From assembly GCA_965240325.2 (NCBI GenBank), contig OZ251224.1, positions 1,240,001 through 1,304,000 on the forward strand: 64,000 bases of DNA, in the 5' to 3' direction. This DNA comes from Rebecca billardiae RCC1528 (Eukaryota > Protista > Haptophyta). A program made the position numbers and the translations under genes. Positions 33,943 through 58,303 of the stretch are shown here, piece by piece (position 1 is the stretch's first letter; each line of letters opens with the position of its first letter). The notes under the pieces were generated by a model that worked only from the letters and a program-made list of their open reading frames with translations, was not told the origin of the DNA and did not search any database.

Positions 33943-34563
33943 TCAGCCAGGAAGGACGCGGACGTAGTGATTCAGCTCAATACAAGGCGGGACTGCCACC
34001 TGCTTTACAGCATGCACCTCAGCGCCTTGCTGGTCTCTGGCGGCGGATGTGGGATGATCGTGGACCCACTTGGCCGTGACCGCGAGGTCGTCGCTCTTTG
34101 TCAAGGCATCCGCGTCGGAGCAGTGCAACAGGATGGCAAACGTTGTGTCCACCGGCACGGTAGGTAGGCGCTGGTCCAGTTGCGCAATCTGCGCGAGGGA
34201 TGCGCGGAGGCCTCGCTCCAGCTGGTCGAGCTCGTCGTCCGTCACCGAATTGCCAAGCGACGCTGCTCGGCGCTTGACCTCGAAGATGTGCTGCTCAAAG
34301 GGTCGGGGCTCGGCGCTCGGGAGGTCATGCGATCGTGCCAGCAGCTCGAGAACGATGCCATCAACGATCCCCATGCGCATGGCCTCGCCGACGCTGGCTA
34401 CTGCCTTGCGCAGGTACGCGGTAAGTGCCGGGTGGCGCGACACGCGCACAGGCAGGTTGAGGAACTTTCTCGTCTCGAAGACCTCGGCCGGATACACGCC
34501 GCGTACATGCAATGTCGCGTTCAGCGCGGCGTCTAGGTACGACATGAGCAGCTCATCCGCCAT
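33943..34563 (-). CDS. REV7: HORMA-domain protein REV7/MAD2L2
   Basis: LHVRGVYPAEVFETRKFLNLPVRVSRHPALTAYL...FEQHIFEV...LRASLAQIAQLDQRLP...TFAILLH. Confidence 0.85.
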   Translation of the reverse strand: MADELLMSYLDAALNATLHVRGVYPAEVFETRKFLNLPVRVSRHPALTAYLRKAVASVGEAMRMGIVDGIVLELLARSHDLPSAEPRPFEQHIFEVKRRAASLGNSVTDDELDQLERGLRASLAQIAQLDQRLPTVPVDTTFAILLHCSDADALTKSDDLAVTAKWVHDHPTSAARDQQGAEVHAVKQVAVPPCIELNHYVRVLPG

Positions 34564-34837
34564 CTCGGACTTCAACCCGCCGCGAGCCCCGTGACGCCGT
34601 CCGCAACGATGCGGCCGCGTAGAGCGCAGCAGTGGAAAAGCCCGTTGGCCACGCCTCCAGCAGCAGGCCGGCCGAGGGATTGCGCGCCCGCCCTCGGTCG
34701 GAGCCCAGGACCGCGCGGACGATGATGAGAAAAAACGACGACTAAAAAAGGCGTGGCGTTCGTGAGTCCGATTTGCCCTAATAGTTTGTTATTTGGCGCT
34801 TGTCCGGCCGGGGCGGCCCTCAGCCGCGCGGATTCCC

Positions 34838-37800
34838 ATGGCGGGCGGCGTGAGTGCGCCGTCGACGCCTGCAAGAGCGGATGAGCCGCCATCGGCCAGG
34901 CCGGGCCCGTTGACCCGGCTGGCGTCCGTCGGCTCGATCATCGATGGGTCGAGCAAGGCCAACCGGAAGTACGGGCGCATGCCGTCGGAGGGGGACCTGG
35001 GCAATGCCCAGTCAGTCGCGGAGCACGTGCGCGCCGTGAACCGCATCGCATCGGTGTGGCGTGCCTTCCTCGCATGCCGTCGGGTGGAGGCGATACTCTT
35101 GGAGAGCTACCAGCCGCGCAACTTTCACCTCAAGGGTTCTGACGAGTCGGCCGACTTTGGCTTGATCGCGTTCGAGTCCCACGCCTCGCGCGAGGCCGCG
35201 CCGTACATACGCGTATCGGACGAGAGCAAGATCGACAAGGTCGTGGGCTTGGTGCGCACGGCGTGGGATGTGCGCGACGCGCAGGTCGTGATCTCGCTGA
35301 CCGGTGGCGCGCAGGACCTGAAGCTCAAGCCGCACGTGCACGACGTCTTCAACCGCGGCCTGGTGCGCGCCGCGCAGCAGACAAACGCGTGGATCGTGAC
35401 GGGCGGCACGGACACGGGCGTGATGAAGCTGGTGGGCGAGGCGCTGCGCGACTACCAGGCGGACGTGCCGTGCATCGGCGTGACGACGTGGGGCGTGGTC
35501 CACGGCCGCGAGCAGCTCGCGAACAACCGTGGCAAGGAGCAGTTCTACCGGCCGATCAAGGTGAACGACGGCTCGGGCGCCGGGCTCGAGCCCAACCACA
35601 CGCACTTCCTGCTCGTGGACACGGGCAAGGAGGGCCAGCGCGCGTGGGGCGGCGAGATCAAGTTCCGCACGGACTTCGAGCAGCACTACTGCCAGCGGTA
35701 CAAGGTGCCGATGGTGCTCGTCGTCGTCGGCGGCAGCTTCGGCACGCTGCAGACGATCGAGCGCGCCGCGGAGAACGAGGTGCCGATCGTGCTCATCTCC
35801 GACTCGGGCGGCGCGCCCGCGACGCTCAGCACGTACATGAAGCTCGGCCGGCTCGAGCTCGACCCGTCGGGGGAGCGCGGGCTCAAGCCGCCCAAGTCGG
35901 ACGAGGAGCGCGCCAAGCTCGAGGCGCAGGTGCAGCGCATCCTCAGCCTGCACGAGAAGCACAAGGTGCTCACCTCGTTCACGACGCGGCAGGGCGAGAC
36001 GCGCAACCTCGACCTGGTGCTGCTCAAGGCGATGCTCTTCGACACGGAGGGCGGGCTGCGGCAGACGAACCTGAAGGAGTCGAAGAAGATGCTGCACCTC
36101 GCGATCGACTGGGGGCGCATCGAGGTCGTCTCGCAGTGGATCGAGAAGAGCGCGGCGATGTACGCGAGCCTCGTCGTGCCCGCCGGCTCGCCGATGAAGT
36201 CGCCCGCGCCCGCCGTGCGCGAGCGGCACGCGTTCGAGCTGCAGCGCCACGCCTCGTCCACGCGCCGCATGTACGACGCGGCGCTGCACACGAAGCAGCA
36301 GCTGGGCAACGAGCTGCAGCAGGCGCTGCAGGAGGCGCTGTACATCGCGCTCAAGCACCGCAAGGCGCCCATCGTCGACCTGCTCCTCAAGGCCAACCTG
36401 CAGGCGGCAGACGTGCCGCTGCTCAACCTGTACCACGACACGCTCGAGACGCTGCACATCTTCGAGGCGGACCTGCAGACGATGCGGATCGCGCTGACGC
36501 GCTGGGCGGAGGCGGACGCGGACACGAACTGGGAGAGGCTGCGCAAGGAGCTCGCGGCGTCCGCGCCCGGCTTCAAGCTCTCGCCGCAGGCGGTGCTCGC
36601 GAAGCTCGGCCGCCACTTCAGCGGGTCGAGCGGCATGAACGGCGTGGCGTCGGGCGCCGCCGCGGCCGCGCCCACGCCCTCGGGCTCGCTTCGCAAGGTG
36701 CAGCTCCCGGCCGATCACGACGTCGGCGCGGACGGCGCCTCGCGGAAGGCCTCGCTCGAGCCGATCGACGCGGCCGAGCGCAAAGGCAGCGTCTTCCGCG
36801 CGCGCGCTCGCGCGAGCCGCCACCAGGCGCGCGCGCAGGCCCTGTACAGCGAGGTTGTGATCCCATGGCTCACGAGCACGTGCCAGCTCGAGCCGCTGGA
36901 CGAGCTGTGGCGCGCGCAGCTGCTGCGCGCGTGGACGGTGGACGACGTGATGTACTGGGCGGTGCTGATGGCGGACGAGGCGCTCGTGCGCGTGCTGTGG
37001 ACGCACGTCGACGAGCCCATCCGGATGGCGCTCGCCGCGAGCAACATGACGTCCAAGCTCGCCAGCCTCGCGCGCTTTGACCGGCAGCGCTTCCTCGATC
37101 TCGCGCACACGTACGAGCGCTGGGCGACGGGCGTGCTTGACCAGGCGACGAACGAGCTCGAGGCGCGCTGGCTGCTGCAGCAGCCGTTCAACACGTGGGT
37201 GCGCGGGCGGACGGACGGCACGCTGGTCACCGCGGCGATCCGCACGCAGCGCAAGGCCTTCCTCGCGCACGCGCACACGCAGTCGCTGCTCGACGCGTGG
37301 TGGCGCGGCGACATTGTCGCGCACTTTGAGCCCGCGCTCGGCCGGGGCAAGTACTGCCTCTCGTCGAGAGAGCCGCACGCGCTGCTCGTGCTCGCGCACG
37401 CGCTGAGCTTCGCGCTGCTGCCGCTCGTCGAGATGGAGCCGACGCTCGCGGCGAAGCACTCGGTGCACATCGAGCGCTCGCGCCGCTCGCTCGAGGGCCG
37501 CAAGACTCAGCTGGGGCGCCGGCCGACGCGGCTCGAGCGCGGCGGCAAGGCGGAGGCGTCGGCGTTCATGTTCCGCCAGCTGCAGTTCGCCGAGGGGATG
37601 GCGGGCGGCTGGCGGCACATGGCCCTCGACTTCTACTCCGCGCCGAAGACCAAGTTCTGGCTGCGCGTCTCGAGCTACGTCGTGTTCCTCGTCCTGTACG
37701 CGACCGTGCTGCTGATGGACGACGGCACGCCCGACGTGTCCGGCTGCGAGGCGGTGTTCAGCGTGTGGGTGTTCGGGCTCGCGGTGGACGAGCTCTTCCA

Positions 37801-39559
37801 GTTCGTGACCAACCGCCGGCTGCACCGCTCGCACTTCGAGGACATCTGGAACTACCTCGACTTCGCGATGCTCTTCCTCGTGTTCCCGATCGTCTGGCTG
37901 CTGCGGATGGTCGCGCTCGCGACGTGCTGCAGCACGCCCTCGCGCGCCATCGAGCTCGACGGCGGCGGGATCTCGCTCGAGCCGGGCGGCGACTGCGTGT
38001 GCATGCTGCTCTCGCGCGCGCGCACGATGCTCGCCGCCAACGCGGTGCTCAGCTTCTTCCGCTTCCTCGCCAACTTCAAGGTGCACCCGCGGCTGGGCGT
38101 GCTGATCCACGTGATCACCGAGATCCAGAAGGACGTGGGCGTCTTCTTCGCCATCCTCTTCTTCGTCGTGATGGGCTTCGCGTTCGCGTTCTCGGGGCTG
38201 GCGCCGCCGCGCCGCTTCTACGTGCACGGCGACTCGTCGAGCCCGCTGCTCATCCCGATCTGGAACCTCTTCGACCTGAGCGACGTGTCGGACGTGACGC
38301 AGGAGTCGGAGTCGCCCGTGCTCGGCATGACGCTGCTCGCCACGTACCTCTTCCTCTCGCAGATCCTGCTCGTCAACCTGCTGATCGCGATGATGAACAC
38401 GTCGTACGCGGAGGCGCACAAGAACGCGGAGCAGGAGTGGGCGTCGTCGCGCGCGTCGAGCATCGAGGAGCTGCTCGTGCTCTCGCCGCTGCCGCCGCCG
38501 ATCTCGGCGCCGTGGCTGCTGTACGAGCTCGTGCGCTCGACGCGGCCGCCGCTCCCGCGGATCACGCGGCGCGCCTCGTCGAGCGCCTCTGAGCACGGCT
38601 CGAGGCACGCCGTCAAGAAGCGGCGGAACATCAAGCTGCTGCACGAGTACCTCGAGCAGCGCCTCTCGACAGAGAACGAGTCGGTCGAGTCGCGCGTGCG
38701 CGTGCTGCGCGACGAGATCGACCGGCTGACAAACATGGTGGAGACGGCGAGCGCTGACCGCGCAGAGTCCAAGTCGATCCTCGACAAGCTCCTCACCGAG
38801 CGCGCCGAGACCACCGAGGCGGTGGCGAAGCTCGAGCGCACGCTGGAGCAGCTGGCGGGGCTGGTCGAGGGCATGCCGCAGCGCGCGCCCGCGGGGGCCG
38901 CGCACAGGCCGCCGCCGCGCCCGCCGCCGAGCGCGGTGCCGAGCCAAGCCGCAGAGCCGCGCATCGCCGTCTCGCCGCCGACCATCGACAGCGCCGGCCG
39001 CGCGCGCCGCCCAAGCAGATTGCGCCGACCGCTCGGGCCGAGCCCCCTGCCGGACCTCGAGCTGGAGAGCATCGGGCCCGGCGAGCCGGCCGTGCCCGCG
39101 CACCCTGAGCAGGACGCTGCGACCGCGCCCCCGCACGAGCGGGTGGCGGCGGCGACCCGGCCGAGCGCGGCCGCGCAGCGCTGTCACAGCGCGCAGAGCG
39201 CGCCACTCGAGGGCCAAGCCGCGGCGCCACCGGCCGAGCGGGCGGCAGAGGGGGCGTCGGTGACCGGAGCGAGCGCCGACGGCAGACTCGACGTGCCAGT
39301 GACGCTGTACGCGCCGCGAGCGGGCGCGACATCCGCGTCGGCGCGGCTGGACAAGCTCGCGGCACAGCGCGAGCGCATCGCTGCGGCAGCGGCGAACGGC
39401 CAGCGGCTCGCACAAGCTGCGAGGCGGTCACCCGCGGCCCCGTTACCGCCGCCAGGAGCCGAGGCGACCGCAGCTGGTGCGCCCCGCAATGGTAGTGCTG
39501 CTGACCCTCCCCCGGAAAGGAGCAGCAGCATTGTCCGCGATGACGTGTTGCTCATGTGA
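34838..39559 (+). CDS. TRPM-like cation channel with SLOG (MHR1/2) domain, paralog 1
   Basis: ISLTGGA, AWIVTGGTDTGVMKLVGEA, LEPNHTHFLLVD, FYSAPKTKFW, six TM segments, ILLVNLLIAMMNTSY, a TRP-box W, LPPPIS and a coiled coil. IQ-like RIASVWRAFLACRR near the N-terminus. No NUDT9-H domain seen. Confidence 0.92.
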   Translation: MAGGVSAPSTPARADEPPSARPGPLTRLASVGSIIDGSSKANRKYGRMPSEGDLGNAQSVAEHVRAVNRIASVWRAFLACRRVEAILLESYQPRNFHLKGSDESADFGLIAFESHASREAAPYIRVSDESKIDKVVGLVRTAWDVRDAQVVISLTGGAQDLKLKPHVHDVFNRGLVRAAQQTNAWIVTGGTDTGVMKLVGEALRDYQADVPCIGVTTWGVVHGREQLANNRGKEQFYRPIKVNDGSGAGLEPNHTHFLLVDTGKEGQRAWGGEIKFRTDFEQHYCQRYKVPMVLVVVGGSFGTLQTIERAAENEVPIVLISDSGGAPATLSTYMKLGRLELDPSGERGLKPPKSDEERAKLEAQVQRILSLHEKHKVLTSFTTRQGETRNLDLVLLKAMLFDTEGGLRQTNLKESKKMLHLAIDWGRIEVVSQWIEKSAAMYASLVVPAGSPMKSPAPAVRERHAFELQRHASSTRRMYDAALHTKQQLGNELQQALQEALYIALKHRKAPIVDLLLKANLQAADVPLLNLYHDTLETLHIFEADLQTMRIALTRWAEADADTNWERLRKELAASAPGFKLSPQAVLAKLGRHFSGSSGMNGVASGAAAAAPTPSGSLRKVQLPADHDVGADGASRKASLEPIDAAERKGSVFRARARASRHQARAQALYSEVVIPWLTSTCQLEPLDELWRAQLLRAWTVDDVMYWAVLMADEALVRVLWTHVDEPIRMALAASNMTSKLASLARFDRQRFLDLAHTYERWATGVLDQATNELEARWLLQQPFNTWVRGRTDGTLVTAAIRTQRKAFLAHAHTQSLLDAWWRGDIVAHFEPALGRGKYCLSSREPHALLVLAHALSFALLPLVEMEPTLAAKHSVHIERSRRSLEGRKTQLGRRPTRLERGGKAEASAFMFRQLQFAEGMAGGWRHMALDFYSAPKTKFWLRVSSYVVFLVLYATVLLMDDGTPDVSGCEAVFSVWVFGLAVDELFQFVTNRRLHRSHFEDIWNYLDFAMLFLVFPIVWLLRMVALATCCSTPSRAIELDGGGISLEPGGDCVCMLLSRARTMLAANAVLSFFRFLANFKVHPRLGVLIHVITEIQKDVGVFFAILFFVVMGFAFAFSGLAPPRRFYVHGDSSSPLLIPIWNLFDLSDVSDVTQESESPVLGMTLLATYLFLSQILLVNLLIAMMNTSYAEAHKNAEQEWASSRASSIEELLVLSPLPPPISAPWLLYELVRSTRPPLPRITRRASSSASEHGSRHAVKKRRNIKLLHEYLEQRLSTENESVESRVRVLRDEIDRLTNMVETASADRAESKSILDKLLTERAETTEAVAKLERTLEQLAGLVEGMPQRAPAGAAHRPPPRPPPSAVPSQAAEPRIAVSPPTIDSAGRARRPSRLRRPLGPSPLPDLELESIGPGEPAVPAHPEQDAATAPPHERVAAATRPSAAAQRCHSAQSAPLEGQAAAPPAERAAEGASVTGASADGRLDVPVTLYAPRAGATSASARLDKLAAQRERIAAAAANGQRLAQAARRSPAAPLPPPGAEATAAGAPRNGSAADPPPERSSSIVRDDVLLM

Positions 39560-40947: not shown

Positions 40948-41241
40948 GCACCGTGCTCCCTCGGGCTGTCAGCTCCGCGTGGCCTGGCGTGCACGTAGAG
41001 TTGCGCTCATGCGTCGATCACGCCTCGCGCCCGCCTGTCGGCCGTCGCGCAGGCGCTGGTCGAACCCTACTCGGACCAGTGCATCATCCCGGGCGCTGCC
41101 GGCGCGGGGGGTCACCCCGGGGACAGCGGTCAGCAGCAGCGGCCCGAACGAATCCGCGGCCCCGCACCGTGCTCCCTGGCTGTCAGCTCCGCGTGGCCTG
41201 GTGTGCACGTGGAGTCGCGCTCATGCGTCGATCACGCCTCG
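40948..41241 (+). repeat. ~80-bp direct repeat pair
   Basis: gcaccgtgctccct...gctgtcagctccgcgtggcctgg...gcgctcatgcgtcgatcacgcctcg at ~40948 and ~41164. Confidence 0.8.
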
Positions 41242-41779: not shown

Positions 41780-44089
41780 TCAGGCATCGTCGTCCTCGAC
41801 CTCATCAGGACCGGTATTGAACAGAAGGCAGCCCAGGCCGACGGCTTCTGCGTCTCGGTGTAAGCGCGCGAGCGCGTGAGCATAGAGCACACGGTCCTCT
41901 GTGAGCCGATCTTGGAGACGCACCGAGGCGGCGTGTCGGTCTGCAGCGCCCTCGATGAGTGTCTCAGCGACGCGTTCGCTCACAGCGGCGGCCAGCACGG
42001 GTCCCGCTTGCTCGCCATGCCCGGGCTGGGCTGCGATCCCGCTCCCGGCCGCGTCGTGCGCCTCGCTCCCGTTGCGCACCGGCCACGCCGAGCCCAGAGA
42101 TGAGCTCGTGCCCTGGCGCACCCTGGCGAGAGAGGTGTTGGAGCACACGCAGTCGGCCGGCAGGCCAACAGGCACAGCCATGCGCGCGAGAGCCACACAC
42201 ACCGATGCGCGCAGCTGCTCAACAACGCCCACGACGAACGCACCGTCCACAGCCGCAAGCGCCGCGCCGAGTGCTCGAGTAGCAGCGCCCTCGACCGCAC
42301 CGGCTTCACCCGGCGCGTCCGTGGCTGCGTCGCCCACGTGCAGCACCTGCGGGGAGCGGGGCGCGCGATGGCACTGCCAGGGCGGGACCGGCAGCGGCAG
42401 CGAGCGGAGCGCGCGCCGGCCCCGAGCGGAGGCGTCGCGGGGCCGCAGTAGCCACTGGCTGAGCGACGGCCAGCGGCGCTTGCGCACGAGCTCCCGGCAG
42501 GCCGCGTGCACGTCGAGCAAGTAGCCCGCGGGCTCGTGCAGCAGCAGGAGGAGCCGCAGCCCCGGCAGGCCCGCCAGCCCGAGGGCGTCTGCCGCGTGCG
42601 CGAGTGGCTCCGTGCTCGACGCGAGGTTGCACCCCGTGGGCAGCGCCACTGCGCCGAGCGAGCGGTTCGCGCCCACGCCCACCGCCCCGGCCTGCGCGCG
42701 GTCGCACGCCGTCCACAGCTCGGGCGAGGCGTATGCGCCCAGCTGCTCGAGGAAGCGCGCGGCCGCGGCGCCCCCGGCGGGCATGAGCGCGAGGAGGTGG
42801 AAGTTGGAGGCGGCAGCAGACGCGGCGGCTTGGGCCGTGCGCGGCGCGACGAAGAACTCGGGCAGCGTGCGGCGCAGGGTGGCGCGGTACGCGAGGGCGC
42901 CGCCGCACAGGTGCCTGATGTGCGCGAGCACGGCCAGGCTCGCGTTCAGCCCGAGCGTCCGCTCCCCGCCCATCATGAAGTGCACTGCCATGGCGCTCGC
43001 GCGCGCGGGCTGGAAGACCACCTTGCCCTTGAGCGAGTGGTGGCGCGGCCGGGGCTGCAGGGGCCCGCAGGGCAGCCCGTGCCGCTCGGCCGCGACCACG
43101 TGGTAGTCGGTGAGCTGGAACGCCACCGCGTCCGGGTGCGCGCCGAGCTGCGCCTCGAGGAGCTCGGCCAAGCCGTCGCGCGGCAGCGTGCCCGCGCCGC
43201 CCGGCGCAGGGCCTGACAGCTTCACGTACTCGTCCACGTCGCACGAGAGCAGCCAGCGCGCGTGGCCTCGGGTGGCGTACAACGAGTGCATGCCGTGGAG
43301 GTGCTGGTCGACGAACGGCTGCCGCCGCCCAAACCAGAACGGCACGATCAGCGCGCCGCGCGGCTCGTATCGCTCGCGCAGCGCGCGCACGTAAGACGTG
43401 TTGAGCGCCGCGCGGTCGTTCACGTACACGAGGGCGCGCTCGACGCCCAGGTGGGTGTGGTACGCCAGCCAGTGCCGGAGCGGGTCGGCCGCGTGCTCGA
43501 GCGTCGGTTGGTTCACGTACAACGCCGCCACGAGCCGCAGCGGGCGCGCGTGCCCGCCGAGCAGCGGCGCGTGCAGCGGCGCAGGCCCGAGGGCGATGGT
43601 CTTGCGCGCGCCCGCGTACTCAAGGCTGAGGTTGGCGCCGCGGCACGGTGGCTCGCCGCAGTCGGCGATGTGAATGCCGCTGTGGAAAAGGACGTGGCTC
43701 ATATTCGTCGGGCGGGTGACTACGCCGTCCGCGCAGCGCGCCTCCGGCGGCACAGGCGTGCAGCGCGCGTCAGCTGCATCAGCTCCGCTGCTCGGTGGAC
43801 GGAAGGCGCACGTCCACGGACCTGCGGGCAGCCGGTGCCCCCTCGGCAGCCCCGTGCCTGGCTCGGCGCTTGCATTCTCAGGTGGCAGACTGCGCACCAT
43901 GCAGATGGTCGCGTTGCGCGAGCTGATGAGGCAGTCGATGAGCTCCGGTCCGTCTGACGGCTCCTGGGATGTGTGATAGGGCGTCACCGCCGTCGTGCAC
44001 TCGTGATACCCGACTTCGGCAGGGAGGATCGGCAGGCAGAGCGCTGTGAGGAGCGCTATCCCAACCGGCGCGTGTCGGCGTGGCCCCAT
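41780..44089 (-). CDS. Secretory-pathway GT92/DUF23-like glycosyltransferase fused to a sulfotransferase-like domain
   Basis: N-terminal signal or anchor. WLAYHTHLGVERALVYVND and WLLSCDVDEYV (DxD) are GT-A motifs. C-terminal LLLHEP, FVVGVVEQLRASVCV and DRVLYAHALARL resemble Golgi sulfotransferases. Confidence 0.65.
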   Translation of the reverse strand: MGPRRHAPVGIALLTALCLPILPAEVGYHECTTAVTPYHTSQEPSDGPELIDCLISSRNATICMVRSLPPENASAEPGTGLPRGHRLPAGPWTCAFRPPSSGADAADARCTPVPPEARCADGVVTRPTNMSHVLFHSGIHIADCGEPPCRGANLSLEYAGARKTIALGPAPLHAPLLGGHARPLRLVAALYVNQPTLEHAADPLRHWLAYHTHLGVERALVYVNDRAALNTSYVRALRERYEPRGALIVPFWFGRRQPFVDQHLHGMHSLYATRGHARWLLSCDVDEYVKLSGPAPGGAGTLPRDGLAELLEAQLGAHPDAVAFQLTDYHVVAAERHGLPCGPLQPRPRHHSLKGKVVFQPARASAMAVHFMMGGERTLGLNASLAVLAHIRHLCGGALAYRATLRRTLPEFFVAPRTAQAAASAAASNFHLLALMPAGGAAAARFLEQLGAYASPELWTACDRAQAGAVGVGANRSLGAVALPTGCNLASSTEPLAHAADALGLAGLPGLRLLLLLHEPAGYLLDVHAACRELVRKRRWPSLSQWLLRPRDASARGRRALRSLPLPVPPWQCHRAPRSPQVLHVGDAATDAPGEAGAVEGAATRALGAALAAVDGAFVVGVVEQLRASVCVALARMAVPVGLPADCVCSNTSLARVRQGTSSSLGSAWPVRNGSEAHDAAGSGIAAQPGHGEQAGPVLAAAVSERVAETLIEGAADRHAASVRLQDRLTEDRVLYAHALARLHRDAEAVGLGCLLFNTGPDEVEDDDA

Positions 44090-45189: not shown

Positions 45190-48100
45190 TCAGAAGCCCT
45201 TGAGCCGCTTGATCAGGTCGTTCGCCTCCTCTTGCACGTTCTCGTCGGACGCGTGCTCGCGCTTGGCGCGCTCGGCCGCCGTGCGCGCGCCGAGCTCGAC
45301 CGCCCGCCGCTTGAGGCTGTCGGAGCCCGCCACCATGTTGTAGACGGCGATGCACGCCTTCTGCTGCAGCAGCGCCTCCTTGGGATGCTTCTCCATCGCG
45401 CGCAGGATCGCCTGGAGCGCGCCCGCGTCCGCCGCCTTCTGCCCGCGCCCGGAGTCGAGCCCGTAGCACTGGCAGGCGACGACCTGGCTCGCCAGCCTCT
45501 GCAGGTTGGCCTCGTCCGGGAAGGCGTCCATGGCGGCCACGGCGGCGCGCAGCACGCCCGCCTCCTCGCCCTGCTTGTTGCGCGCGAGCGCGGCGTCGTC
45601 CTTGCCACCGAGCAAGTTGATGAGCGAGTCGCACCCGTCAGAGAGCACGTCCTTGTGCTTCGCGCTCGCGGTCATCGCGGCGACGACCGCGGAGATCGCG
45701 CCCGCCTCCGCGGCCTGCTGCTTGCGCGTGAGCGCGGCGGCCGTCGTGCCCCTGCACACGTTGGCGAGCGCCTGGCACGCCTTCTGGTGCACGCTCTTGT
45801 CCGCGGGGTGCGCGTTGATGGCGCTCACGACCGGCGGCAGCACGCCCGCCTCGGCCGCGGCCTGCTTGCGCGGGTCGCTGCTGTGGCAGATGTTGTGCAG
45901 CGCGCTGCACGCCTTGGCCTGCACCTCCGCGTGCTTGGCGTACGTCTTCATCGCGTGCACCAGCGCGTGCAGCGCGCCCGCGTCCACCGCGGGCTGCTCG
46001 GAGCCGTCCGGCCTCGTCTTGCCGATGAGCACGTCGAGCGCGCGCACGGCCGCGCCCGCGTTGATTGAGCTCTCGCTGGCGGCCGCCGAGTCGATGGCGG
46101 CGACGAGGCCCTTGAAGTCGAGCTTCTCGAGCTGCTCCTTCGTCAGCGCGGCGGTCGGGCCCGCGCCCGCGCCCGCGGCCGCGCCCGCGGCCGCGCGCGT
46201 GCCCGCGTCCGGGCCCAGCCGCTTCTGCAGCAGATCGTCCGCCTCCGCCTTCACCTTCTCGTCGCTCGGGTGCTCGCGCTTGGCGCGCTCCGCCGCGGCG
46301 CGCGCGCCCGCGTCGATCGCCTGCTGCTGGATCGCGCGCGCGGTGTCGTTCGTGCCCGAGCAGATGTTGTACAGCCCGATGCATGCCTCGATCTGGATCT
46401 TGGCGCTCTTCACGTGCGAGTCCATCGCGCGGACGAACGCCTTGACCGCGCCCGCGTCCGCCGCCGCCTTCTTGCGCGTGCCCGGGCCGAGGCAGACGGA
46501 CTGCAGCACCTTGCACCCGGTGAGCTGCATCTCCTCGAAGCCGGAGTGCTGGTCCATCGAGCGGATCACGGCGGGCAGCACGCCCTCGTCCACCGCCTGC
46601 TGCTTGCGCTTGTACCCCGCCTCGTCCTTGCCGTACATCACGTTGTACAGCGCGTTGCACGCCTTGGCCTGCGCGTTGGAGGACTTGGCGTGCCGCTCCA
46701 TCGCCTTCACGATGGCGCGCACGGCGCCCGCGTCGGCCGCGGGCTGCTCCGAGCCGGCCTGCTTGGTGCGTACGCCCACCTCGAACATCGCGGTGGACAC
46801 CGCGTCGGCATCCGGCGCGTTCTCCACGGCGGCGATCAGCCCCTTCCAGTCCAGCGCCTTGAGCTGCTCCTTGGTGAGCGCGACCGCCGGCTTCACGCCC
46901 AGCCTGTTCTTCAGCAGGTCGTCCGCCTCGGCCTTCACCTTCTCGTCGCTCGGGTGCTCGCGCTTGGCGCGCTCCGCCGCGGCGACGGCGCCCGCGTCCT
47001 TCGCCTGCTTCTGCACCGCGACCATCCCGGTGCAGATGTTGTACAGCGCGATGCACGCCTCCTTCTGCAGCTCGGCGCTCTTCGGGTGCTTGTCCATCGC
47101 GCGGACCACCGCCTTGACCGCGCCCGCGTCCGCCGCCGCCTGCTTGCGCGTGCCCGGGCCGAGGCAGACGGACTTGACGAGGCTGCACCCCTTGAGCTGC
47201 ATCTCCTGGTGGTCGGCGTGCGCCTCCATCGCGCGCATCACGATGGGCAGCACACCCTGGTCCACCGCCTGCTGCTTGCGCTTGTACCCCGCCTCGTCCT
47301 TGCCGTAGATCACGTTGATCATCGCGTTGGTCGCCTTGGCCTGCGTGCTCGCGGCCTTGGCATGCTTCTCGAGCGCCTTGATGATGGCGCGCACGGCGCC
47401 GGCGTCGGCCGCGGGCTGCTCCGTCCCGGCCTGCTTGGTGCGCACGGCCACCTCGACGACCGCGCGCTCGGCCGACTCCGCGTCCGGCGCGTTCTCCACG
47501 GCGGCCACCAGCCCCTTCCAGTCCAGCGCCTTGAGCTGCTCCTTGCTCAGCCCGCCGCCCGCCGCGCCCGTCGCCGCGCCCGTCGCCGGCGCGGCAGGGG
47601 CGGGCGTCGCCGGCGCGGCAGGGGCGGGCGACGCGGGCGGCGGCTTCGCAGGCGGCGTGCTCGGCGGCTTCGCGGGCGGCGTGCTCGGCGGCGTGCCGCC
47701 GCCCTCGCCCGCGCCCTGCACGAGCTCCGCCGGCACGCCCGTCTGCTCGAAGTCCTTGATCTTCTGCAGCAGGCGGCGCTGCCGAGGCTTCGAGTCGAGG
47801 CCCCAGCCGGCGAGGTCGTCAAGCTCGACGAAGGCCAAGTCCTCGCCGACGAAGCGCGACTTGCGCGCCATCGGCGCGATGTCCCCAAAGCTGAGTGCCT
47901 CGAGCAGCGCGCACACGCCCTCCACGTCGAGCGAGGCGAGGGGCACCACGCCCTTCGGCTTGGCAGCAGCGTTGGGAGCGCCGTCGCCGCCTTTGCCGCC
48001 GTCCTTCCCGCCGCGCGCGCCCGACTTTGGCGACTCGGGCCCCGTGTGGCTCACGGGCGTGGGCGCGCTTGGCGCGTGCGTCTCGCGCTGCACCATCCCG

Positions 48101-48729
48101 CCCACGAGCTTCACGAGCCCCAGCGCGTCCTCGTACGGCCGGTCGAACAGGCTCACGTCCTGCGGCGGGATGCTGTTCAGACCGCTGAAGTCTTGCAGCG
48201 CGTCGCGCCGGATGAGCTCGTACTTGTTGCGCTCGCGCGTGCTCGCGTTGGGCTTGAGCAGCTCGTCGAGCGGCCACTGCTCAGTCTTCTTTGGCGGCAT
48301 CGCGGGGTCGACGCGCACGGGCACGATGTCCACGCCGCGCTTGAGGGCGGCATGGATCTCGAGCAGGCACGGCAACGACCTGAAGAGCGCGCGCGTGAGC
48401 AGCACGACGAGCACCTTGGCTGTCGAGCGGTCACCATCGATGCGAAGCAGGAAGATGCGCCAGTCCTCACCCGGTGGGAGCATCAGCCCCGAGATGCACG
48501 GCAGCCCTGAGCTGAAGAAGAGCGAGATGAGGTCTCGCGCACGCCAGACGCCCGGGCCCGTGCCGTGCTCGTCTTGTTCGCGCTTGCCCGTCGCATACGA
48601 GAAGGCGATCTCCGGGTAGAAGTCGTCAAAGTTGTCCGTGGGCACCAGCGCCTGCAGCTCATTCTGCAGCTGCAGCACCGCGTCCTTTGTCGTCCGCTCG
48701 GGCGGCTCGCTCACCCACGAGGCCGACAT
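45190..48729 (-). CDS. TIR - SAM - armadillo-repeat protein (SARM1-like domains, reversed order)
   Basis: TIR-like: IAFSYA...GEDW...AKVLVVLLTRALFRSLPCLLEIHAALKRGVDIVPV. SAM: LDVEGVCALLEALSF...FVGEDLAFVELDDLAGWGLDSKPRQRRLLQKI. Then a Pro/Ala linker and three ARM modules (AGAVRAIIKALEKH...QAKACNALYN). Confidence 0.8.
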   Translation of the reverse strand: MSASWVSEPPERTTKDAVLQLQNELQALVPTDNFDDFYPEIAFSYATGKREQDEHGTGPGVWRARDLISLFFSSGLPCISGLMLPPGEDWRIFLLRIDGDRSTAKVLVVLLTRALFRSLPCLLEIHAALKRGVDIVPVRVDPAMPPKKTEQWPLDELLKPNASTRERNKYELIRRDALQDFSGLNSIPPQDVSLFDRPYEDALGLVKLVGGMVQRETHAPSAPTPVSHTGPESPKSGARGGKDGGKGGDGAPNAAAKPKGVVPLASLDVEGVCALLEALSFGDIAPMARKSRFVGEDLAFVELDDLAGWGLDSKPRQRRLLQKIKDFEQTGVPAELVQGAGEGGGTPPSTPPAKPPSTPPAKPPPASPAPAAPATPAPAAPATGAATGAAGGGLSKEQLKALDWKGLVAAVENAPDAESAERAVVEVAVRTKQAGTEQPAADAGAVRAIIKALEKHAKAASTQAKATNAMINVIYGKDEAGYKRKQQAVDQGVLPIVMRAMEAHADHQEMQLKGCSLVKSVCLGPGTRKQAAADAGAVKAVVRAMDKHPKSAELQKEACIALYNICTGMVAVQKQAKDAGAVAAAERAKREHPSDEKVKAEADDLLKNRLGVKPAVALTKEQLKALDWKGLIAAVENAPDADAVSTAMFEVGVRTKQAGSEQPAADAGAVRAIVKAMERHAKSSNAQAKACNALYNVMYGKDEAGYKRKQQAVDEGVLPAVIRSMDQHSGFEEMQLTGCKVLQSVCLGPGTRKKAAADAGAVKAFVRAMDSHVKSAKIQIEACIGLYNICSGTNDTARAIQQQAIDAGARAAAERAKREHPSDEKVKAEADDLLQKRLGPDAGTRAAAGAAAGAGAGPTAALTKEQLEKLDFKGLVAAIDSAAASESSINAGAAVRALDVLIGKTRPDGSEQPAVDAGALHALVHAMKTYAKHAEVQAKACSALHNICHSSDPRKQAAAEAGVLPPVVSAINAHPADKSVHQKACQALANVCRGTTAAALTRKQQAAEAGAISAVVAAMTASAKHKDVLSDGCDSLINLLGGKDDAALARNKQGEEAGVLRAAVAAMDAFPDEANLQRLASQVVACQCYGLDSGRGQKAADAGALQAILRAMEKHPKEALLQQKACIAVYNMVAGSDSLKRRAVELGARTAAERAKREHASDENVQEEANDLIKRLKGF

Positions 48730-48962
48730 GATGAGCCCCGACGATAGCCGAGCGCCCCCGGCCGCCGGGTCCAGCAGGCAAGCGCAGGAGTGGTTACACA
48801 GTCGTTACGTGACACCGCGGGTAAATGTCTCTACTGTATGTAAGATTTACTATGACGAACTAATCTCTAAATCATGTTCATCATTTTGGTCCAAAACTAA
48901 TATCCGGTATTCAAGGCTCGCTGAAAAGCCGCCGAGCACCCGCCCGCGGGTCGAGAACTCGA
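48730..48962. promoter_or_regulatory. Putative bidirectional promoter between the TIR-SAM-ARM and TRPM-like genes
   Basis: 233-bp head-to-head gap with an AT-rich core at ~48800-48915. Confidence 0.55.
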
Positions 48963-51900
48963 ATGGCGGGCGAACCGGCGCCGGGCGACGGTGCCACGCG
49001 CTCGCCGCCCGAGGCCGCGGATGGGGGCCAGTATGCGCGCAGGGCGTCGCGCAGGCCGACCCTGACGTTCCGGCGCCCCTCGACCGCGGACGGGTACAGC
49101 GCACTCGACCCGTCCAAAGTGAGGCGCCGGCTGTCCCTCCTGCCGGCGCTCGCGATGCAGCGCAAGCAGCGCCAGTCGATCCGGCAGGTGGAGCACGCGG
49201 CCCTCGTCGTCTTCGCGGCGCAGAAGATCTGGCGGTACTGGACGATGCTGCGCGAGCGGCGCACCGAGTCCTGCAAGCCCGACCAGTTCTCACGGTACGA
49301 CGGCGTCGGCACGGCCGACTACGGCTCGATCGTGTTTGAGAAGCACGGCGTGCGCGAGCCCGCGCGGTACATCCGGCTGTGGACGAAGGACACGAGCGAC
49401 ATCGACCGGGTGGTCGGTCTGGTGACGAACGTGTGGGCCGTCCCGCGCGCGCGCGTCGTGATCTCGCTCACCGGCGGCGCGCAGGACCTCAACCTGAAGC
49501 CGCACGTTCACGACGTGATCAACCGCGGGCTGGTGCGCGCCGCGCAGCTCACGCACGCGTGGATCGTGACGGGCGGCACGGACACGGGCGTGATGAAGCT
49601 GGTGGGCGACGCGGTCCGCGACTACCAGGCCAACGTGCCGTGCATCGGCGTCGGGACGTGGGGCGTCACGTACGGGCGCGAGCAGCTCTCGAACAACCGC
49701 GGCGGCGAGCGCTTCTACCGCAAGCTGCGCCGCTCGGACAAGTCGGGCGCGCCGCTGCAGCCGAGCCACACGCACTTCTTGCTCCTGGACTCAGGGCACG
49801 AGGGCAAGGACGCGTGGGGCGGCGAGATCGACTTCCGCATGGAGTTCGAGAAGCGATACTGCGAGCGGTACGGCGTGCCCACCGTGCACGTCGCGATCGG
49901 CGGCGGCGCGGGCACGCTGCGCACCATCAAGGTGGCGGTGCAGACGGGGGTGCCGACGGTGCTCATCACGGACTCGGGCGGCGCGCCCGCCGTGATCGCG
50001 CACTACATGCGCACGGAGGAGCTCGCCGTCGACCCCCGCGGTGAGCGCGGCTTCAAGCCGCCGCCCGACGTCGCGCGCTCGGCGAGCAAGCTGGGCGAGT
50101 GGAAGGAGCAGATGCGCGCGCAGGTGGCAGAGATTGTCGAGCTGAACAAGCACAAGCGCGTGCTCACCGCCTTCTCCGCGCGGCTCGGCGCGGACGTGCA
50201 CTCCAACCTCGACCTGGTGCTGCTCAACGCGATGCTCTTCGACACGGAGGGCAACCTGCGCCAGCACGACGTGCACGAGTCGAAGCAGATGCTGCAGCTC
50301 GCCATCGAGTGGGGGCGCAAGGAGGTCGTGCAGGCGTGGATGGAGAAGAGCCCCACGCTCACCGTCGGCCGCACGTCGGTCGCGCAGCCCGGCCGCGCCG
50401 AGGCGGCGGCGCAGCCGCGCAAGCAGCGCCTGTCGCACGGCGCCGAGCCCGGCGGCACCGCCGGGATGGCCGTCGAGGAGGCGCTGCGCGAGGGCCTGCT
50501 CCTCGCGCTCACGACGTACAAGGCGGACATCGTCGACCTGCTGCTCGGGCAGAACGTGAAGGCGGCCGAGATCGACCTGCTCCAGCTGTGGCACGGCACG
50601 GACATGCGCAACTTCGACGTGCCGATCGAGCAGCTCGAGCGCGGGATGCGGCTGTGGGAGCAGGAGACGCTCGGCGCCACCGCGAAGAAGGTCGACGAGG
50701 CACTGTACGCGCTCTCGTTCCACGCTGGCGGCGGCGCGGCCGGGCGGCGAGCCGGCGGCGGCTGGCTCGGCTGGCTCAGCACGGCCTTTGGGCTGGGCGG
50801 CAGCGGCGGCTCGGCCGAGAGGGGCGGGGATGGGAGCAGCGCCTCCGAGGGCGCGGCGGCGGCGCATCCCGCCGCGCCCTCCCGGCTGAGCACCGAGGAC
50901 CCCGCTGCGGGCTTCGCGAAGAACGGCGGCGCGAACGGCGGCGGCGCGCCGACCGTGGGCGACGTGAGCGCGATGCACGCGGAGCGGCGGCAGCGGCGCA
51001 AGCTCGAGCTGTACCGCAAGTACGTGGTGCCCTTCATCGCGCACACGTTCGACATGCGCGAGCTCAGCGCGCTCTGGCTGCGCCCGAGTACGCGCAGCTG
51101 GCGCGTGCAGGACCTCTTCTACTGGGCGGTGTGCGACCCGCTCGCGGGCGAGCGGCTCGTGCACGTGCTCTGGTGCCACGTCGACGAGCCGATCCGCTCG
51201 GCGCTCGTCGCCAGCCACATGTCGTCCGTGCTCGCGCGGCTCGCGCGGTTCGGCGCGAAGAAGCACGAGGTGCTCGCGCACACGTACGAGTCGTGGGCCG
51301 TCGGCGTGCTCGACCAGTGCCAGAACGAGATCGAGGCGCGCTGGCTGCTGCAGAGACAGTTTGACGAGTGGCCGGCCGAGCGGCGCGGCGGCACGCTCAT
51401 GTCGTTCGCCGTGCGCCGCTCGCGCAAGGCGTTCGTCGCGCACGCGCACGCGCAGGCGACGCTCGACGCGTGGTGGCGCGGCGACATCGTCGAGCGCTTC
51501 GATGCGGAGCGCGGCTTCGGCTCGCGCTGCCTGCTCGACATCGACCCGCCGTTTGTGCGTGTGCTGCTGCACGCCGCCACCTTCACGCTGCTCGGGCTCA
51601 TCGAGATGCAGCCGACGCTCGCCGCCAAGTACCACCACGCGCGCCGGGAGCAGCTCGCGGGCGGGCCGGCCTCGCCCCTCTCGCCGCTGCGCCGCGGCAA
51701 GGGCCCGGTCCACCGCAGCGCCACGCAGCACTGGCACAACATCTTCCTGCTCGACACGTGGCGCGACATCGATCCGCCCAAGGTGGGCTGGTGGGCCGAG
51801 TTCCGCGACTTTTACGCCGCGCCCAAGACGAAGTTTGTGCTGCGCACCACGATGTACGTGTGCTTCCTCGCGCTGTACGCGGCCGTGCTCGTGGGCGACG

Positions 51901-53783
51901 ACGGCAAGCCCGACCTCACGTACATGGAGCTCGGCTTCTACGTGTGGGCGCTCTCACACGCGGTGGACGAGGCGCAGCAGCTCGCAGTCAACCTCGACCA
52001 CGACGAGCAGCACTTTGGCGACGAGGGCTGGAACGTGATCGACGCGATCATGTTCTGGGCGCTCTTCCCGATCGCGATCGCGCTGCGCGTGGCCGCGCGC
52101 GTCACGTGCTGCGCGCAGCCGCAGCGCTCGATCGAGCACGACCCGCTCGGCCACTCGCTCGCCACCGAGTGTACGTGCGAGCCCGCGGCGCTCGCGCGCC
52201 TCATCCTCGCGGTGAACGCGGTGCTCTGCTTCGTGCGCTTCCTCGCCAACTACCGCGTGCACAAGCGGCTGGGCGTGCTGATCCACGTGATCTTCACGAT
52301 GCTCTCGGACGTGCAGGTGTTCGTGTACATCCTCTCCGTCGTCGTCTGCGGCTTCGCGCTCGCGTTCGGCGGGATCGCGCCGCCGCGCATGCTGCGTCTG
52401 CACGGCGACGCGTCGAGCCCGTTCCTCATCCCGATCTGGTCCGCGTTCGACCTGCCCGACATCGACCAGCTCACCGAGCCCGAGCACTCGGAGGCGCCGT
52501 TCCTCGGGATGGCGCTGCTCGCCGTCTATCTCTTCGTCGCGCAGATCCTGCTGGTCAACCTGCTGATCGCGATGATGAACTCGTCGTACGCCAAGGCGCA
52601 GCACTCGAGCGAGGAGGAGTGGGCGGCGTCGCGCGCGACCAGCGTGATGGAGCTGCGCATGCTGCTGCCGTGCCCGCCGCCCTTCTCGCTGCCGTACCTC
52701 GGCCTCCTGCTGCTCGCGCAGCTCGGGCGCAACTGCCTCGCGCGCTGCGGCCTCGCCGAGCGGCTGCGCTCGCGCCCGCAGCGCGCGCGGCTCGGCAGCC
52801 TGATCGACGCGGACGACACGGGCGAGCGCAAGAGGCGCTACTTCAAGTTCCTGCACGACTTCCTCGAGGAGCAGCAGCGGCGGCACACCTCGAGCATCGA
52901 CCAGCGGATGATCGCGCTGCGCGAGGACGTCGACCGGCTCGCGTCGATGCTCGAGACCGCCGCGGCCGACCGCGCCGACTCCAAGGTGCTCATCGACCGC
53001 GTGGACGCGCGGCTGGAGGCGAGCCTGCCGGCGGCGGCGCTGCAGACGGCGCGCTCGAGCATGGCGGCGCGCGCGTCCACCGCCGCGCTCGGCGCGTCGG
53101 AGCGCGGCCAGCAGGCGCTCTTCGAGCGAAGGGTGGCCAGCCCGGGCAGCTCGCCGCTGCCCGCCGGTCGGTTGGAGTCCGATCCGGCCGCCTCGCCCGC
53201 GGAGGCGGCCCTCGCGTCGCGCGTGCGCGCCCTCGAGGCTCGCGAGGCCGAGCTGCTGGCTCAGCTCGACACGGCGCGGCAGCAAGCGGCGGAGGCGACG
53301 GGTGCGCCGCGCGGCCAGCCAGCCATCTCGCTTGATGAGCGGCTGGCCGCCATCGCCTCGCCAGCCGGCTCTTCGCGCTCGGGCTCGTCGCTGAGCCAAC
53401 GGCCGGCGCGCCCGGGCCCGCCGCCGCACGCCACGCCCCTCTCCGCGGCTCTGTCCGGCGACGCGGATGGCGCGCCGTCTCCTGCGCGCAACAACTCGCG
53501 ACCGCGCACGGCGCCGCGCCCTGCAGGCGACGCGCGCGAGCCGCTGTGGCGAGAGCTGCCCGCCGTGGGCACGAGCAGCCGCTCCGACCACAGGCCCAAC
53601 CGTGCGCCGCCAGCATCCTCCCGCTCGCCGCCGCCCGACGCCAGAGGCCCGCCGAGCGCGAGACGCGAGGGGGCGCTTCGGCCTGCCCAGCCGCCTCGCC
53701 GGCCCGCGGCACGGCCGGGCGACCGCGACGTGCCGCCACGGCCGGGGCAAGGACGCCCATCGTACGGCGACAACTACCTGTAA
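48963..53783 (+). CDS. TRPM-like cation channel with SLOG (MHR1/2) domain, paralog 2
   Basis: Same motif set as paralog 1: ISLTGGAQDL, AWIVTGGTDTGVMKLVG, HTHFLLLD, FYAAPKTKF, ILLVNLLIAMMNSSY and PPPFS. IQ-like AAQKIWRYW. Confidence 0.92.
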   Translation: MAGEPAPGDGATRSPPEAADGGQYARRASRRPTLTFRRPSTADGYSALDPSKVRRRLSLLPALAMQRKQRQSIRQVEHAALVVFAAQKIWRYWTMLRERRTESCKPDQFSRYDGVGTADYGSIVFEKHGVREPARYIRLWTKDTSDIDRVVGLVTNVWAVPRARVVISLTGGAQDLNLKPHVHDVINRGLVRAAQLTHAWIVTGGTDTGVMKLVGDAVRDYQANVPCIGVGTWGVTYGREQLSNNRGGERFYRKLRRSDKSGAPLQPSHTHFLLLDSGHEGKDAWGGEIDFRMEFEKRYCERYGVPTVHVAIGGGAGTLRTIKVAVQTGVPTVLITDSGGAPAVIAHYMRTEELAVDPRGERGFKPPPDVARSASKLGEWKEQMRAQVAEIVELNKHKRVLTAFSARLGADVHSNLDLVLLNAMLFDTEGNLRQHDVHESKQMLQLAIEWGRKEVVQAWMEKSPTLTVGRTSVAQPGRAEAAAQPRKQRLSHGAEPGGTAGMAVEEALREGLLLALTTYKADIVDLLLGQNVKAAEIDLLQLWHGTDMRNFDVPIEQLERGMRLWEQETLGATAKKVDEALYALSFHAGGGAAGRRAGGGWLGWLSTAFGLGGSGGSAERGGDGSSASEGAAAAHPAAPSRLSTEDPAAGFAKNGGANGGGAPTVGDVSAMHAERRQRRKLELYRKYVVPFIAHTFDMRELSALWLRPSTRSWRVQDLFYWAVCDPLAGERLVHVLWCHVDEPIRSALVASHMSSVLARLARFGAKKHEVLAHTYESWAVGVLDQCQNEIEARWLLQRQFDEWPAERRGGTLMSFAVRRSRKAFVAHAHAQATLDAWWRGDIVERFDAERGFGSRCLLDIDPPFVRVLLHAATFTLLGLIEMQPTLAAKYHHARREQLAGGPASPLSPLRRGKGPVHRSATQHWHNIFLLDTWRDIDPPKVGWWAEFRDFYAAPKTKFVLRTTMYVCFLALYAAVLVGDDGKPDLTYMELGFYVWALSHAVDEAQQLAVNLDHDEQHFGDEGWNVIDAIMFWALFPIAIALRVAARVTCCAQPQRSIEHDPLGHSLATECTCEPAALARLILAVNAVLCFVRFLANYRVHKRLGVLIHVIFTMLSDVQVFVYILSVVVCGFALAFGGIAPPRMLRLHGDASSPFLIPIWSAFDLPDIDQLTEPEHSEAPFLGMALLAVYLFVAQILLVNLLIAMMNSSYAKAQHSSEEEWAASRATSVMELRMLLPCPPPFSLPYLGLLLLAQLGRNCLARCGLAERLRSRPQRARLGSLIDADDTGERKRRYFKFLHDFLEEQQRRHTSSIDQRMIALREDVDRLASMLETAAADRADSKVLIDRVDARLEASLPAAALQTARSSMAARASTAALGASERGQQALFERRVASPGSSPLPAGRLESDPAASPAEAALASRVRALEAREAELLAQLDTARQQAAEATGAPRGQPAISLDERLAAIASPAGSSRSGSSLSQRPARPGPPPHATPLSAALSGDADGAPSPARNNSRPRTAPRPAGDAREPLWRELPAVGTSSRSDHRPNRAPPASSRSPPPDARGPPSARREGALRPAQPPRRPAARPGDRDVPPRPGQGRPSYGDNYL

Positions 53784-54047
53784 CTATACGAGCAGCCGCG
53801 TTGCGACGCGCAACGCTGCACAGTGCTCTAAGCTCGCTCTGACCGTGTCGTAGTCTTTCGGTGTAGTGACCGGACGCGAGTCACTACGGTAGACTCACTC
53901 ACTCTACGACAGCGCAGTAGTACTGAGTCTGATACTACTGATTGATGACGCGACTATATGATGATCGCGACTTGACTCTGCGCTGACGCGTCTTGACTAA
54001 CAGTTTACTACAAGAATAAGAGACGCACACAGCTCACGGGCAGGCGA

Positions 54048-54190
54048 ATATATATATATATATATATATAGATATATAGATATAGATATAGATATATAGA
54101 TATAGATATAGATATAGATATAGATATAGATATAGATATAGATATAGATATAGATATAGATATAGATATAGATATAGATATAGATATAGA
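54048..54190. repeat. (TA)n then (TATAGA)n microsatellite
   Basis: Seen directly. Confidence 0.97.
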
Positions 54191-54637
54191 CTCTATACGC
54201 ACTAGACTGTCCATGACGTCACTACGGACTGTACTCAATCGGCTACTCATCTACGGTCTCGCTAGCTAGAGCCTAGACATCACAATAAGTCATCACGATG
54301 ACGACAGCGCGCCATATTGACGCGACGACCGGCGGACGCCGCGGACGTCACGAGACTACATCACGCGATGAATCCGCCTTTATTATACTGCTTATTGCGC
54401 GCATCAGCCGAGCATCATGCGCCGTACTGCTGCTAGATATACTGCTCTATTAAGCTGCGCGCTGCTGATATGATATATCGATCATCGCACGACTAGCTAT
54501 CGATGCGCTGCGATACGAGGAGGCCCATCAACTCACCTGCCAGTGATGGCGCCGCGGCCGCCACCGGCGGCCGGACGAGCCGCGGCGGAGAATAGGGTGC
54601 TAGATGAGTAGCTTAGATATGGCTTATAGTAGTACGC

Positions 54638-58269: not shown

Positions 58270-58303
<34 letters not shown>

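Follow-up and report, generated by a model that had tools for sequence, protein, structure and literature searches.

In a 64,000-nt stretch of the genome of Rebecca billardiae RCC1528 (Haptophyta), namely positions 1,240,001-1,304,000 of contig OZ251224.1 on the forward strand (the window, i.e., all of the DNA that was analysed), a gene encoding a TIR-SAM-ARM protein, designated TSA, lies head-to-head with a gene for a TRPM2-like cation channel, designated TRPM_B. Our analysis led to the view that both are real genes that have probably evolved independently of each other, their head-to-head position being a lineage-specific rearrangement rather than a conserved module—the adjacency looks like a recent chance neighbourhood. 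An earlier note, made from the letters of the sequence, had described two divergently transcribed genes separated by a 233-bp gap, and both open reading frames (ORFs) were indeed recovered at their exact coordinates, with lengths of 1179 and 1606 amino acids. Because the window is rich in G+C (ranging from 53 to 76%), spurious long ORFs also occur in other frames, and the true reading frames of TSA and TRPM_B were settled by domain evidence. Neither exact protein is present in a collection of 15 billion proteins. The pair is laid out as follows:

45190..48729, minus strand: TSA gene, a single ORF of 1179 amino acids (ORF; Pfam Arm, SAM_2 and weak TIR_2)
48730..48962, no strand: divergent intergenic region of 233 bp with an AT-richer core, a possible shared promoter (sequence)
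48963..53783, plus strand: TRPM_B gene, 1606 amino acids, a TRPM2-like channel without NUDT9-H (ORF, Pfam, PDB sequence search)

The evidence that carries this reading comes from related loci, and it involves three further genes of the window. A paralogous TRPM2-like channel, TRPM_A, is found 9 kb from the TSA/TRPM_B pair and shares with TRPM_B 46% identity over 1324 amino acids (local blastp), the same architecture and identical pocket residues. TRPM_A is itself head-to-head with a HORMA-domain gene, at a spacing similarly short to the gap between TSA and TRPM_B, while a glycosyltransferase gene (GT) is placed, together with TSA, between the two channels:

33943..34575, minus strand: HORMA-domain gene, head-to-head with TRPM_A (Pfam HORMA, 1.2e-5; tblastn, 47%, E 1.6e-55)
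34793..39559, plus strand: TRPM_A, paralogous TRPM2-like channel (Pfam, blastp, alignment)
41780..44089, minus strand: GT (Pfam Glyco_tranf_2_4)

A maximum-likelihood tree of the channels, built with a quick search, pairs TRPM_A with the protein P0001 and TRPM_B with P0002 (SH-aLRT 99 and 96, respectively), and the 90% clusters of P0001 and P0002 hold the Diacronema lutheri proteins KAG8470545.1 and KAG8470544.1—the products of the adjacent genes KFE25_008966 and KFE25_008965. The gene order of the D. lutheri locus (L067) is RNA-pol-I-A34 (+), TRPM_B counterpart (+), TRPM_A counterpart (-) and HORMA (+). Hence, the two channel counterparts are tail-to-tail, the gene upstream of the TRPM_B counterpart is RNA-pol-I-A34, and the divergent pair that is conserved is that of HORMA and TRPM_A (47% identity). 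Searches of this 25.5-kb locus with the hidden Markov model (HMM) of the TIR family, with TSA and with GT gave no match. In the transmembrane part, the raw identity of TRPM_B is higher to the counterpart of TRPM_A (50%) than to its own counterpart (45%); whichever of the two is the strict orthologue, neither D. lutheri channel has a TIR neighbour. The HORMA counterparts were located at 20709-21338 of L067 and at 71-700 of a metagenome contig (L066), with the divergent pair kept and 47% identity.

The same picture emerged from the TIR side. Metagenomes were scanned for loci of the TIR family with a 10-sequence TIR alignment, the 62-sequence alignment being too diverse for this use, and 56 loci were retrieved that reduced to 22 non-redundant ones (213 kb in total; 13 of the 22 at least 7.6 kb long). 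Neither a TRPM relative nor a TSA-like SAM-ARM part was found in any of these 22 loci; likewise, no TRPM gene was present in the TIR-family locus L001, and this TIR family was missing from three other protist TRPM loci (L004, L007 and L008). The earlier note had proposed a co-regulated sensor-effector locus, and had itself named a missing linkage in relatives, combined with a lack of co-expression, as a ground for abandoning that idea. Wherever relatives allowed a test, the pair is absent—with no TIR within 10 kb in D. lutheri and none of the 22 TIR loci or three TRPM loci containing both genes—which leaves the claim of a dedicated locus unsupported on the first of these counts.

We then considered the two proteins individually, starting with the N-terminal part of TSA:

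48079..48624, minus strand: TIR domain, amino acids ~36-217 (AlphaFold2 model, structural superposition, TIR_2 matches of relatives)
48358..48360, minus strand: E124 codon; putative catalytic Glu of the S-x-P-C-L-x-E motif on helix alpha-C (translation)

Taken alone, TSA scores only 20-22.8 bits against the Pfam TIR_2 family, below the 28-bit cut-off, and a PDB sequence search with amino acids 1-240 gave no match. Relatives that are 35-50% identical to the TSA TIR domain do pass TIR_2, which is matched by 57 of the 62 aligned domain copies of relatives (E<=0.01; best 1.9e-9); across the relatives examined, TIR_2 matches reach an E value of 1.1e-14. A first, single-sequence AlphaFold2 model of amino acids 1-340 (pLDDT 37) was superseded by a model of amino acids 14-225 based on the 62-sequence alignment, which reached a mean pLDDT of 94.5 and a pTM of 0.90. 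Foldseek matched this model significantly to the TIR domains of RPS4, RUN1, RPP1, SPARTA and SARM1 (probability 1.0 for RPS4 and RUN1), and VIA-align superposed it on RUN1 with a Z score of 14.9 (3.0 Å over 159 residues) and on the SARM1 TIR domain with a Z score of 14.6 (2.3 Å over 130 residues), all 50 entries listed being TIR domains. In addition, protein-language features assign the TSA TIR domain to haptophyte TIR_2 clusters (0.94). Modeling therefore confirms a predicted flavodoxin-like TIR fold for the N-terminal part of TSA, as the earlier note had called it, despite the sub-threshold Pfam score.

The glutamate that the same note had singled out, within CLLEI, corresponds to E124 of the TSA sequence PCLLEI. 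Its motif, S-x-P-C-L-x-E, sits on helix 106-117 of the model (alpha-C) and is matched, in a profile-to-PDB alignment, to the plant motif S-x-W-C-L-x-E-L, with E124 aligned to the Glu of WCLDEL. In the plant enzymes, catalysis depends on the Glu of this motif, e.g., E100 of RUN1. Conservation of E124 reaches at least 90% across the 62 aligned sequences, and all 55 of the full-length relatives compared have the residue, in keeping with a putative catalytic role.

To place this domain in a broader family, an exhaustive, profile-free search was run with TSA amino acids 1-240 as the query against 1.84 billion cluster representatives. A total of 278 relatives were retrieved at E<=1e-3, and 162 of them at E<=1e-10, the best being 39-52% identical; a search for full-length homologues with amino acids 1-340 gave no match, probably as low-complexity words filled the candidate list. 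Those members of the family that have names belong to Chrysochromulina parva or to metagenomes of marine or freshwater origin, and a scan of viral contigs for the family gave no match. The TIR domains of these relatives are joined to ankyrin, protein kinase, MORN, LRR, TPR, and pentapeptide and decapeptide repeat domains and, further, to IIGP GTPase, KAP NTPase and PCMT domains, and none of the best 150 relatives carries the SAM or ARM part of TSA. Since the partners are this diverse and the SAM-ARM part is absent from the best 150 relatives, TSA appears to be another product of domain shuffling within an expanded protist TIR repertoire. A 2025 study of Gephyrocapsa huxleyi described TIR genes that carry a conserved Glu, are responsive to virus infection and serve as markers of resistant strains; no extra domains were found in these genes, and TRP channels are not mentioned in the paper (PMC12489294).

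The closest relative of the TSA TIR domain, P0003 (909 amino acids), is encoded at 10001-12730 of L001, a 35.6-kb metagenome contig, among genes for myosin, LRR and kelch proteins. This protein has tandem copies of the domain at amino acids ~350-520 and 600-790, the HMM domains corresponding to amino acids 394-567 and 641-832 of a longer stop-to-stop ORF.

The remainder of TSA consists of a SAM domain and an extended ARM region:

47749..47928, minus strand: single SAM domain, amino acids 268-327 (Pfam SAM_2)
45193..47550, minus strand: three tandem ARM modules, M1 (amino acids 394-617), M2 (618-861) and M3 (862-1179) (Pfam Arm, repeat scan)

Both assignments made in the earlier note held, the ARM call being robust (Pfam Arm, E 5.9e-26) and the SAM_2 match lying modestly above its cut-off (23.7 vs 20.5 bits). 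Atlas features gave a weak SAM lead for the SAM region (0.85), and a PDB sequence search with the SAM domain alone returned no match. According to the repeat scan, the ARM region is built of 126-nt (42-amino-acid) units in 11 copies. Modules M1 and M2 are 75% identical as proteins and 85% identical as DNA, and contain 300-nt copies located 672 nt apart, which suggests that this part of TSA was duplicated fairly recently. The solved relatives of the ARM part are generic—designed ARM proteins and importin-alpha—and no SARM1 entry was found among its best 60 PDB matches.

Turning to the channel, TRPM_B was annotated with two main regions:

49362..50012, plus strand: SLOG (MHR1/2) domain, amino acids 134-350 (LSDAT_euk, hsTRPM2 alignment, clade comparison)
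51987..52610, plus strand: transmembrane and pore region, Ion_trans amino acids 1009-1216 (Pfam; alignment to nvTRPM2 and hsTRPM2)

Pfam identified LSDAT_euk, the SLOG domain in TRPM channels, at amino acids 134-350 (6e-47), followed by the TRPM2 domain (8.5e-10) and Ion_trans (7e-9), and the best solved relatives in a PDB sequence search were nvTRPM2 (6co7, 1.7e-65) and then hsTRPM2. No NUDIX or NUDT9-H domain was detected in TRPM_B by Pfam, and a hidden NUDT9-H exon nearby was ruled out, as tblastn with the NUDT9-H regions of three relatives came back empty across the window. The description of the channel in the earlier note, with an N-terminal SLOG domain and no NUDT9-H, was thereby borne out, and TRPM_B can be assigned on sequence grounds to a TRPM2-like group without NUDT9-H. 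When metagenomes were scanned with the SLOG alignment, no relative was confirmed.

In nvTRPM2, the N-terminal site alone gates the channel, NUDT9-H not being needed, and ADP-ribose (ADPR) is contacted there by six residues: T143, T179, Y264, R271, T307 and R329 (Toth et al., PMC7201885). An alignment to hsTRPM2 places T170, T206, W285, R292, T318 and G340 of TRPM_B at these positions—five of six contacts kept, as judged from the alignment only and with Trp counted for Tyr. The exception is a Gly (G340) at the position of hsR358/nvR329; among the contacts of nvTRPM2, it was the loss of R329 that raised the ADPR EC50 (half-maximal effective concentration) most (PMC7201885). The idea that this Gly marks a dead ADPR pocket was considered and rejected: the D-S-G-G motif to which it belongs is also found in a protist clade with NUDIX-bearing channels (P0153 and P0154) among its members, so G340 would be a clade trait and not proof of a dead pocket. 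Moreover, the transmembrane Ca2+ site is kept in TRPM_B, with E/Q on S2 (D-E-x-x-Q) and N/D on S3 (W-N-x-x-D), these residues lying directly upstream of the Ion_trans range. The S6 and TRP-helix motifs are likewise kept, and the region of the selectivity filter is divergent.

These features are consistent with the following model. TSA, taken to be cytosolic, belongs to a large TIR_2 subfamily of shuffled domain composition, found in haptophytes and marine protists; judging by its fold, its Glu and its family, it would cleave NAD+ or make a signal, and would have to self-associate to do so. Oligomerisation would come from the one SAM domain, and the three ARM modules could serve as a ligand- or protein-binding, or an auto-inhibitory, part. 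TRPM_B and TRPM_A are ancient paralogs, both of them TRPM2-like cation channels of protist type. Judging by its pocket and Ca2+ site, TRPM_B would be opened by cytosolic Ca2+ together with an ADPR-like nucleotide that occupies the SLOG (MHR1/2) cleft; because it has no NUDT9-H, the channel would be unable to hydrolyse its ligand. ADPR made by TSA, or by other TIR enzymes of the genome, could reach TRPM_B, and nothing singles out this pair. Cross-talk between the two proteins through free ADPR is, by analogy, plausible at the level of the pathway.

Some observations nevertheless weigh against independent evolution of the two genes and a merely lineage-specific arrangement. An orthologous locus was found in one related genome only, that of D. 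lutheri, and a young module would show no conserved synteny in any case. The divergent gap is only 233 bp long, which makes co-regulation of TSA and TRPM_B plausible through a possible bidirectional promoter shared by both genes. In addition, the biochemical fit between a TIR product and a SLOG channel is, by analogy, real: in rat sensory neurons, knock-down of TRPM2 lessens the degeneration caused by forced dimerisation of the SARM1 TIR domain (Li et al. 2021, PMC8704956), and Garb et al. consider that TRPM SLOG domains might be receptors of glycocyclic ADPR, gcADPR (PMC11025887). The short gap and these two studies also favour a dedicated two-gene module, in which the ARM part would sense a cue, SAM would oligomerise the protein, the TIR domain would make an ADPR-type messenger and the neighbouring SLOG channel, expressed from the shared promoter, would act as the specific effector in Ca2+ influx or death—with the putative catalytic Glu kept in TSA, five of six contacts kept in the SLOG pocket and no NUDT9-H present to clear the ligand. 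We regard this module as unlikely. The linkage is missing in D. lutheri, in the 22 non-redundant TIR loci and in the three TRPM loci; TRPM_A has the same pocket yet has an unrelated HORMA partner, and it is that pair which is conserved; the TIR family occurs fused to many kinds of partner; and PADLOC detected no Thoeris component. It would be similarly improbable that the pair was assembled recently from a SAM-oligomerised TIR NADase and a NUDT9-H-less channel under a bidirectional promoter, as a nucleotide-to-Ca2+ switch in antiviral defence or cell death. The domain calls of the earlier note and its biochemical logic stand—with the conserved Glu, the five contacts and the Ca2+ site in their favour—but the dedicated, co-evolving locus that it built upon them finds no support.

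A looser, non-exclusive coupling at the pathway level deserves some consideration, even if we hold it to be doubtful. Here, many TIR NADases would raise a pool of ADPR-type nucleotides under stress or infection, to be read by every TRPM2-like channel of the cell (TRPM_A, TRPM_B and others), with the shared promoter adding only co-expression. The identical pocket residues of TRPM_A and TRPM_B would fit such a scheme, as would a TIR family with an invariant Glu in many architectures, the response of G. huxleyi TIR genes to virus infection and their tie to resistance (PMC12489294), and the gating of nvTRPM2 through its N-terminal site alone; against it stands the Gly that replaces the Arg of hsR358/nvR329, the most EC50-sensitive contact in nvTRPM2 (PMC7201885). 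A non-enzymatic TSA, whose TIR domain would act as a scaffold or adaptor through homotypic contacts while its SAM and ARM parts serve an unrelated role, e.g., protein trafficking or cytoskeleton binding, seems highly improbable. Many animal TIR domains are adaptors, the TIR_2 score of TSA itself lies below the cut-off and its ARM matches are of the generic, importin-alpha-like kind; however, the Glu is invariant across the family, and the closest solved structures (RUN1, RPP1, SARM1 and SPARTA) are enzymatic TIR domains. Two independently evolving genes, brought together by a rearrangement in this lineage, thus remain the reading that we favour, and close head-to-head spacing does not, in this genome, by itself amount to evidence of function.

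Several other features of the window were recorded. A repeat scan revealed no transposon-like flanks around the block formed by GT and TSA; in the spacer between TRPM_A and GT, two 64-nt direct copies (40964-41027 and 41178-41241) are 95% identical and 214 nt apart. Past TRPM_B, the tail-to-tail spacer holds a microsatellite of the (TA)n/(GATA)n type at 54028-54212, which on the minus strand reads as a 'SISISI' ORF. Beyond it, on the minus strand, a 1743-amino-acid WD40-repeat ORF (56487-61718) has S1-S4-like membrane helices at its end, and the ORF at 54638-56566 begins with an S5-pore-S6 region (weak Ion_trans/PKD_channel), followed by ~7 more hydrophobic segments. The two ORFs are separated by a frame break at ~56487-56566 and probably constitute one WD40-TRP-like channel fusion gene (54638-61718, minus strand), interrupted by either a frameshift or a short intron; this putative gene is tail-to-tail with TRPM_B. 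Finally, a long ORF on the plus strand (9690-13436) encodes an NRPS-like (nonribosomal peptide synthetase-like) adenylating enzyme with an AMP-binding domain, a phosphopantetheine site and ankyrin repeats at the C terminus.

The significance of these genes is best seen against known systems, of which SARM1 and its Caenorhabditis elegans relative TIR-1 (ARM-SAM-SAM-TIR NADases) are the most obvious. TSA contains the same three domain types, its TIR model superposes on that of SARM1 (Z 14.6), a Glu is retained at the position of the catalytic one, and SAM-driven oligomerisation with regulation by the ARM part offers a reasonable working model. The differences are substantial: the order of domains is reversed in TSA (TIR-SAM-ARM x3), there is one SAM domain instead of two, the ARM part consists of three long, duplicated modules that match designed ARM proteins and proteins of the importin-alpha type, and the TIR domains are only 11-18% identical, the model being equally close to plant TIR domains. 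Because of the reversed order, the single SAM domain, the generic ARM part and this low TIR identity, TSA is not a descendant of SARM1, and the TIR-SAM-ARM set appears to have arisen by independent domain shuffling. The label 'SARM1-like' given in the earlier note therefore fails on domain order, SAM number and ARM kinship; TSA instead documents how the domain set of SARM1 could be assembled independently, and in reverse, within a large haptophyte TIR family.

Plant NADases of the nucleotide-binding leucine-rich repeat (NLR) and TIR-only types (RUN1, RPS4, RPP1 and L7) are the best structural matches of the TSA TIR domain (Z 13.7-14.9), and their S-x-W-C-L-x-E-L motif aligns with the S-x-P-C-L-x-E motif of the TSA family. 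Unlike these plant proteins, TSA has no NB-ARC or LRR domain and no EDS1-type receptor context, and its family carries an insertion between beta-A and alpha-A with invariant R, D and G residues. With type I Thoeris (ThsB, a TIR protein, and ThsA, a SIR2-SLOG protein) the shared element would be the logic, i.e., an ADPR-derived signal made by a TIR domain and read by the SLOG domain of an effector. The SLOG domain here is of the TRPM type (LSDAT_euk) and fused to a channel, and the TIR and SLOG genes are not a conserved pair. PADLOC returned no Thoeris match for TSA or TRPM_B at E<=0.1, and the Thoeris-like interpretation put forward earlier finds neither a component of that system nor a conserved TIR/SLOG linkage to build on. 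A literature search found no report of a TIR-SAM-ARM protein or of a TIR/TRPM gene pair in algae.

Among TRPM2 channels (human, zebrafish, nvTRPM2 and the choanoflagellate chanzyme), TRPM_B shares the MHR1/2 SLOG domain, the TRPM2 domain, the six-transmembrane pore, the TRP helix and the coiled coil, as well as the Ca2+ site and, if Trp is counted for Tyr, five of the six N-site contacts. TRPM_B departs from them in lacking NUDT9-H, in the Gly that stands for hsR358/nvR329, in its divergent filter region and in a long, low-complexity C-terminal tail; protist TRPM2-like channels without NUDT9-H thus retain most of the ADPR pocket. A functional parallel is the axis from SARM1 through (cyclic) ADPR to TRPM2 in rat sensory axons, which places a TIR NADase upstream of TRPM2 in a pathway of degeneration (PMC8704956). 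No genomic linkage is reported for the animal genes; here, adjacency is the only link. If TSA and TRPM_B did work together, a eukaryote would have TIR-made nucleotides tied directly to a Ca2+ channel gated through SLOG—a step that so far is no more than suspected, both downstream of SARM1 and in the virus responses of algae—and a recently assembled pair, if real, would represent, in a eukaryote, a genome-encoded counterpart of both the SARM1-TRPM2 axis and Thoeris logic. Either way, TSA and TRPM_B are clean candidates for addressing the NADase activity of algal TIR proteins and the gating of channels by their products.

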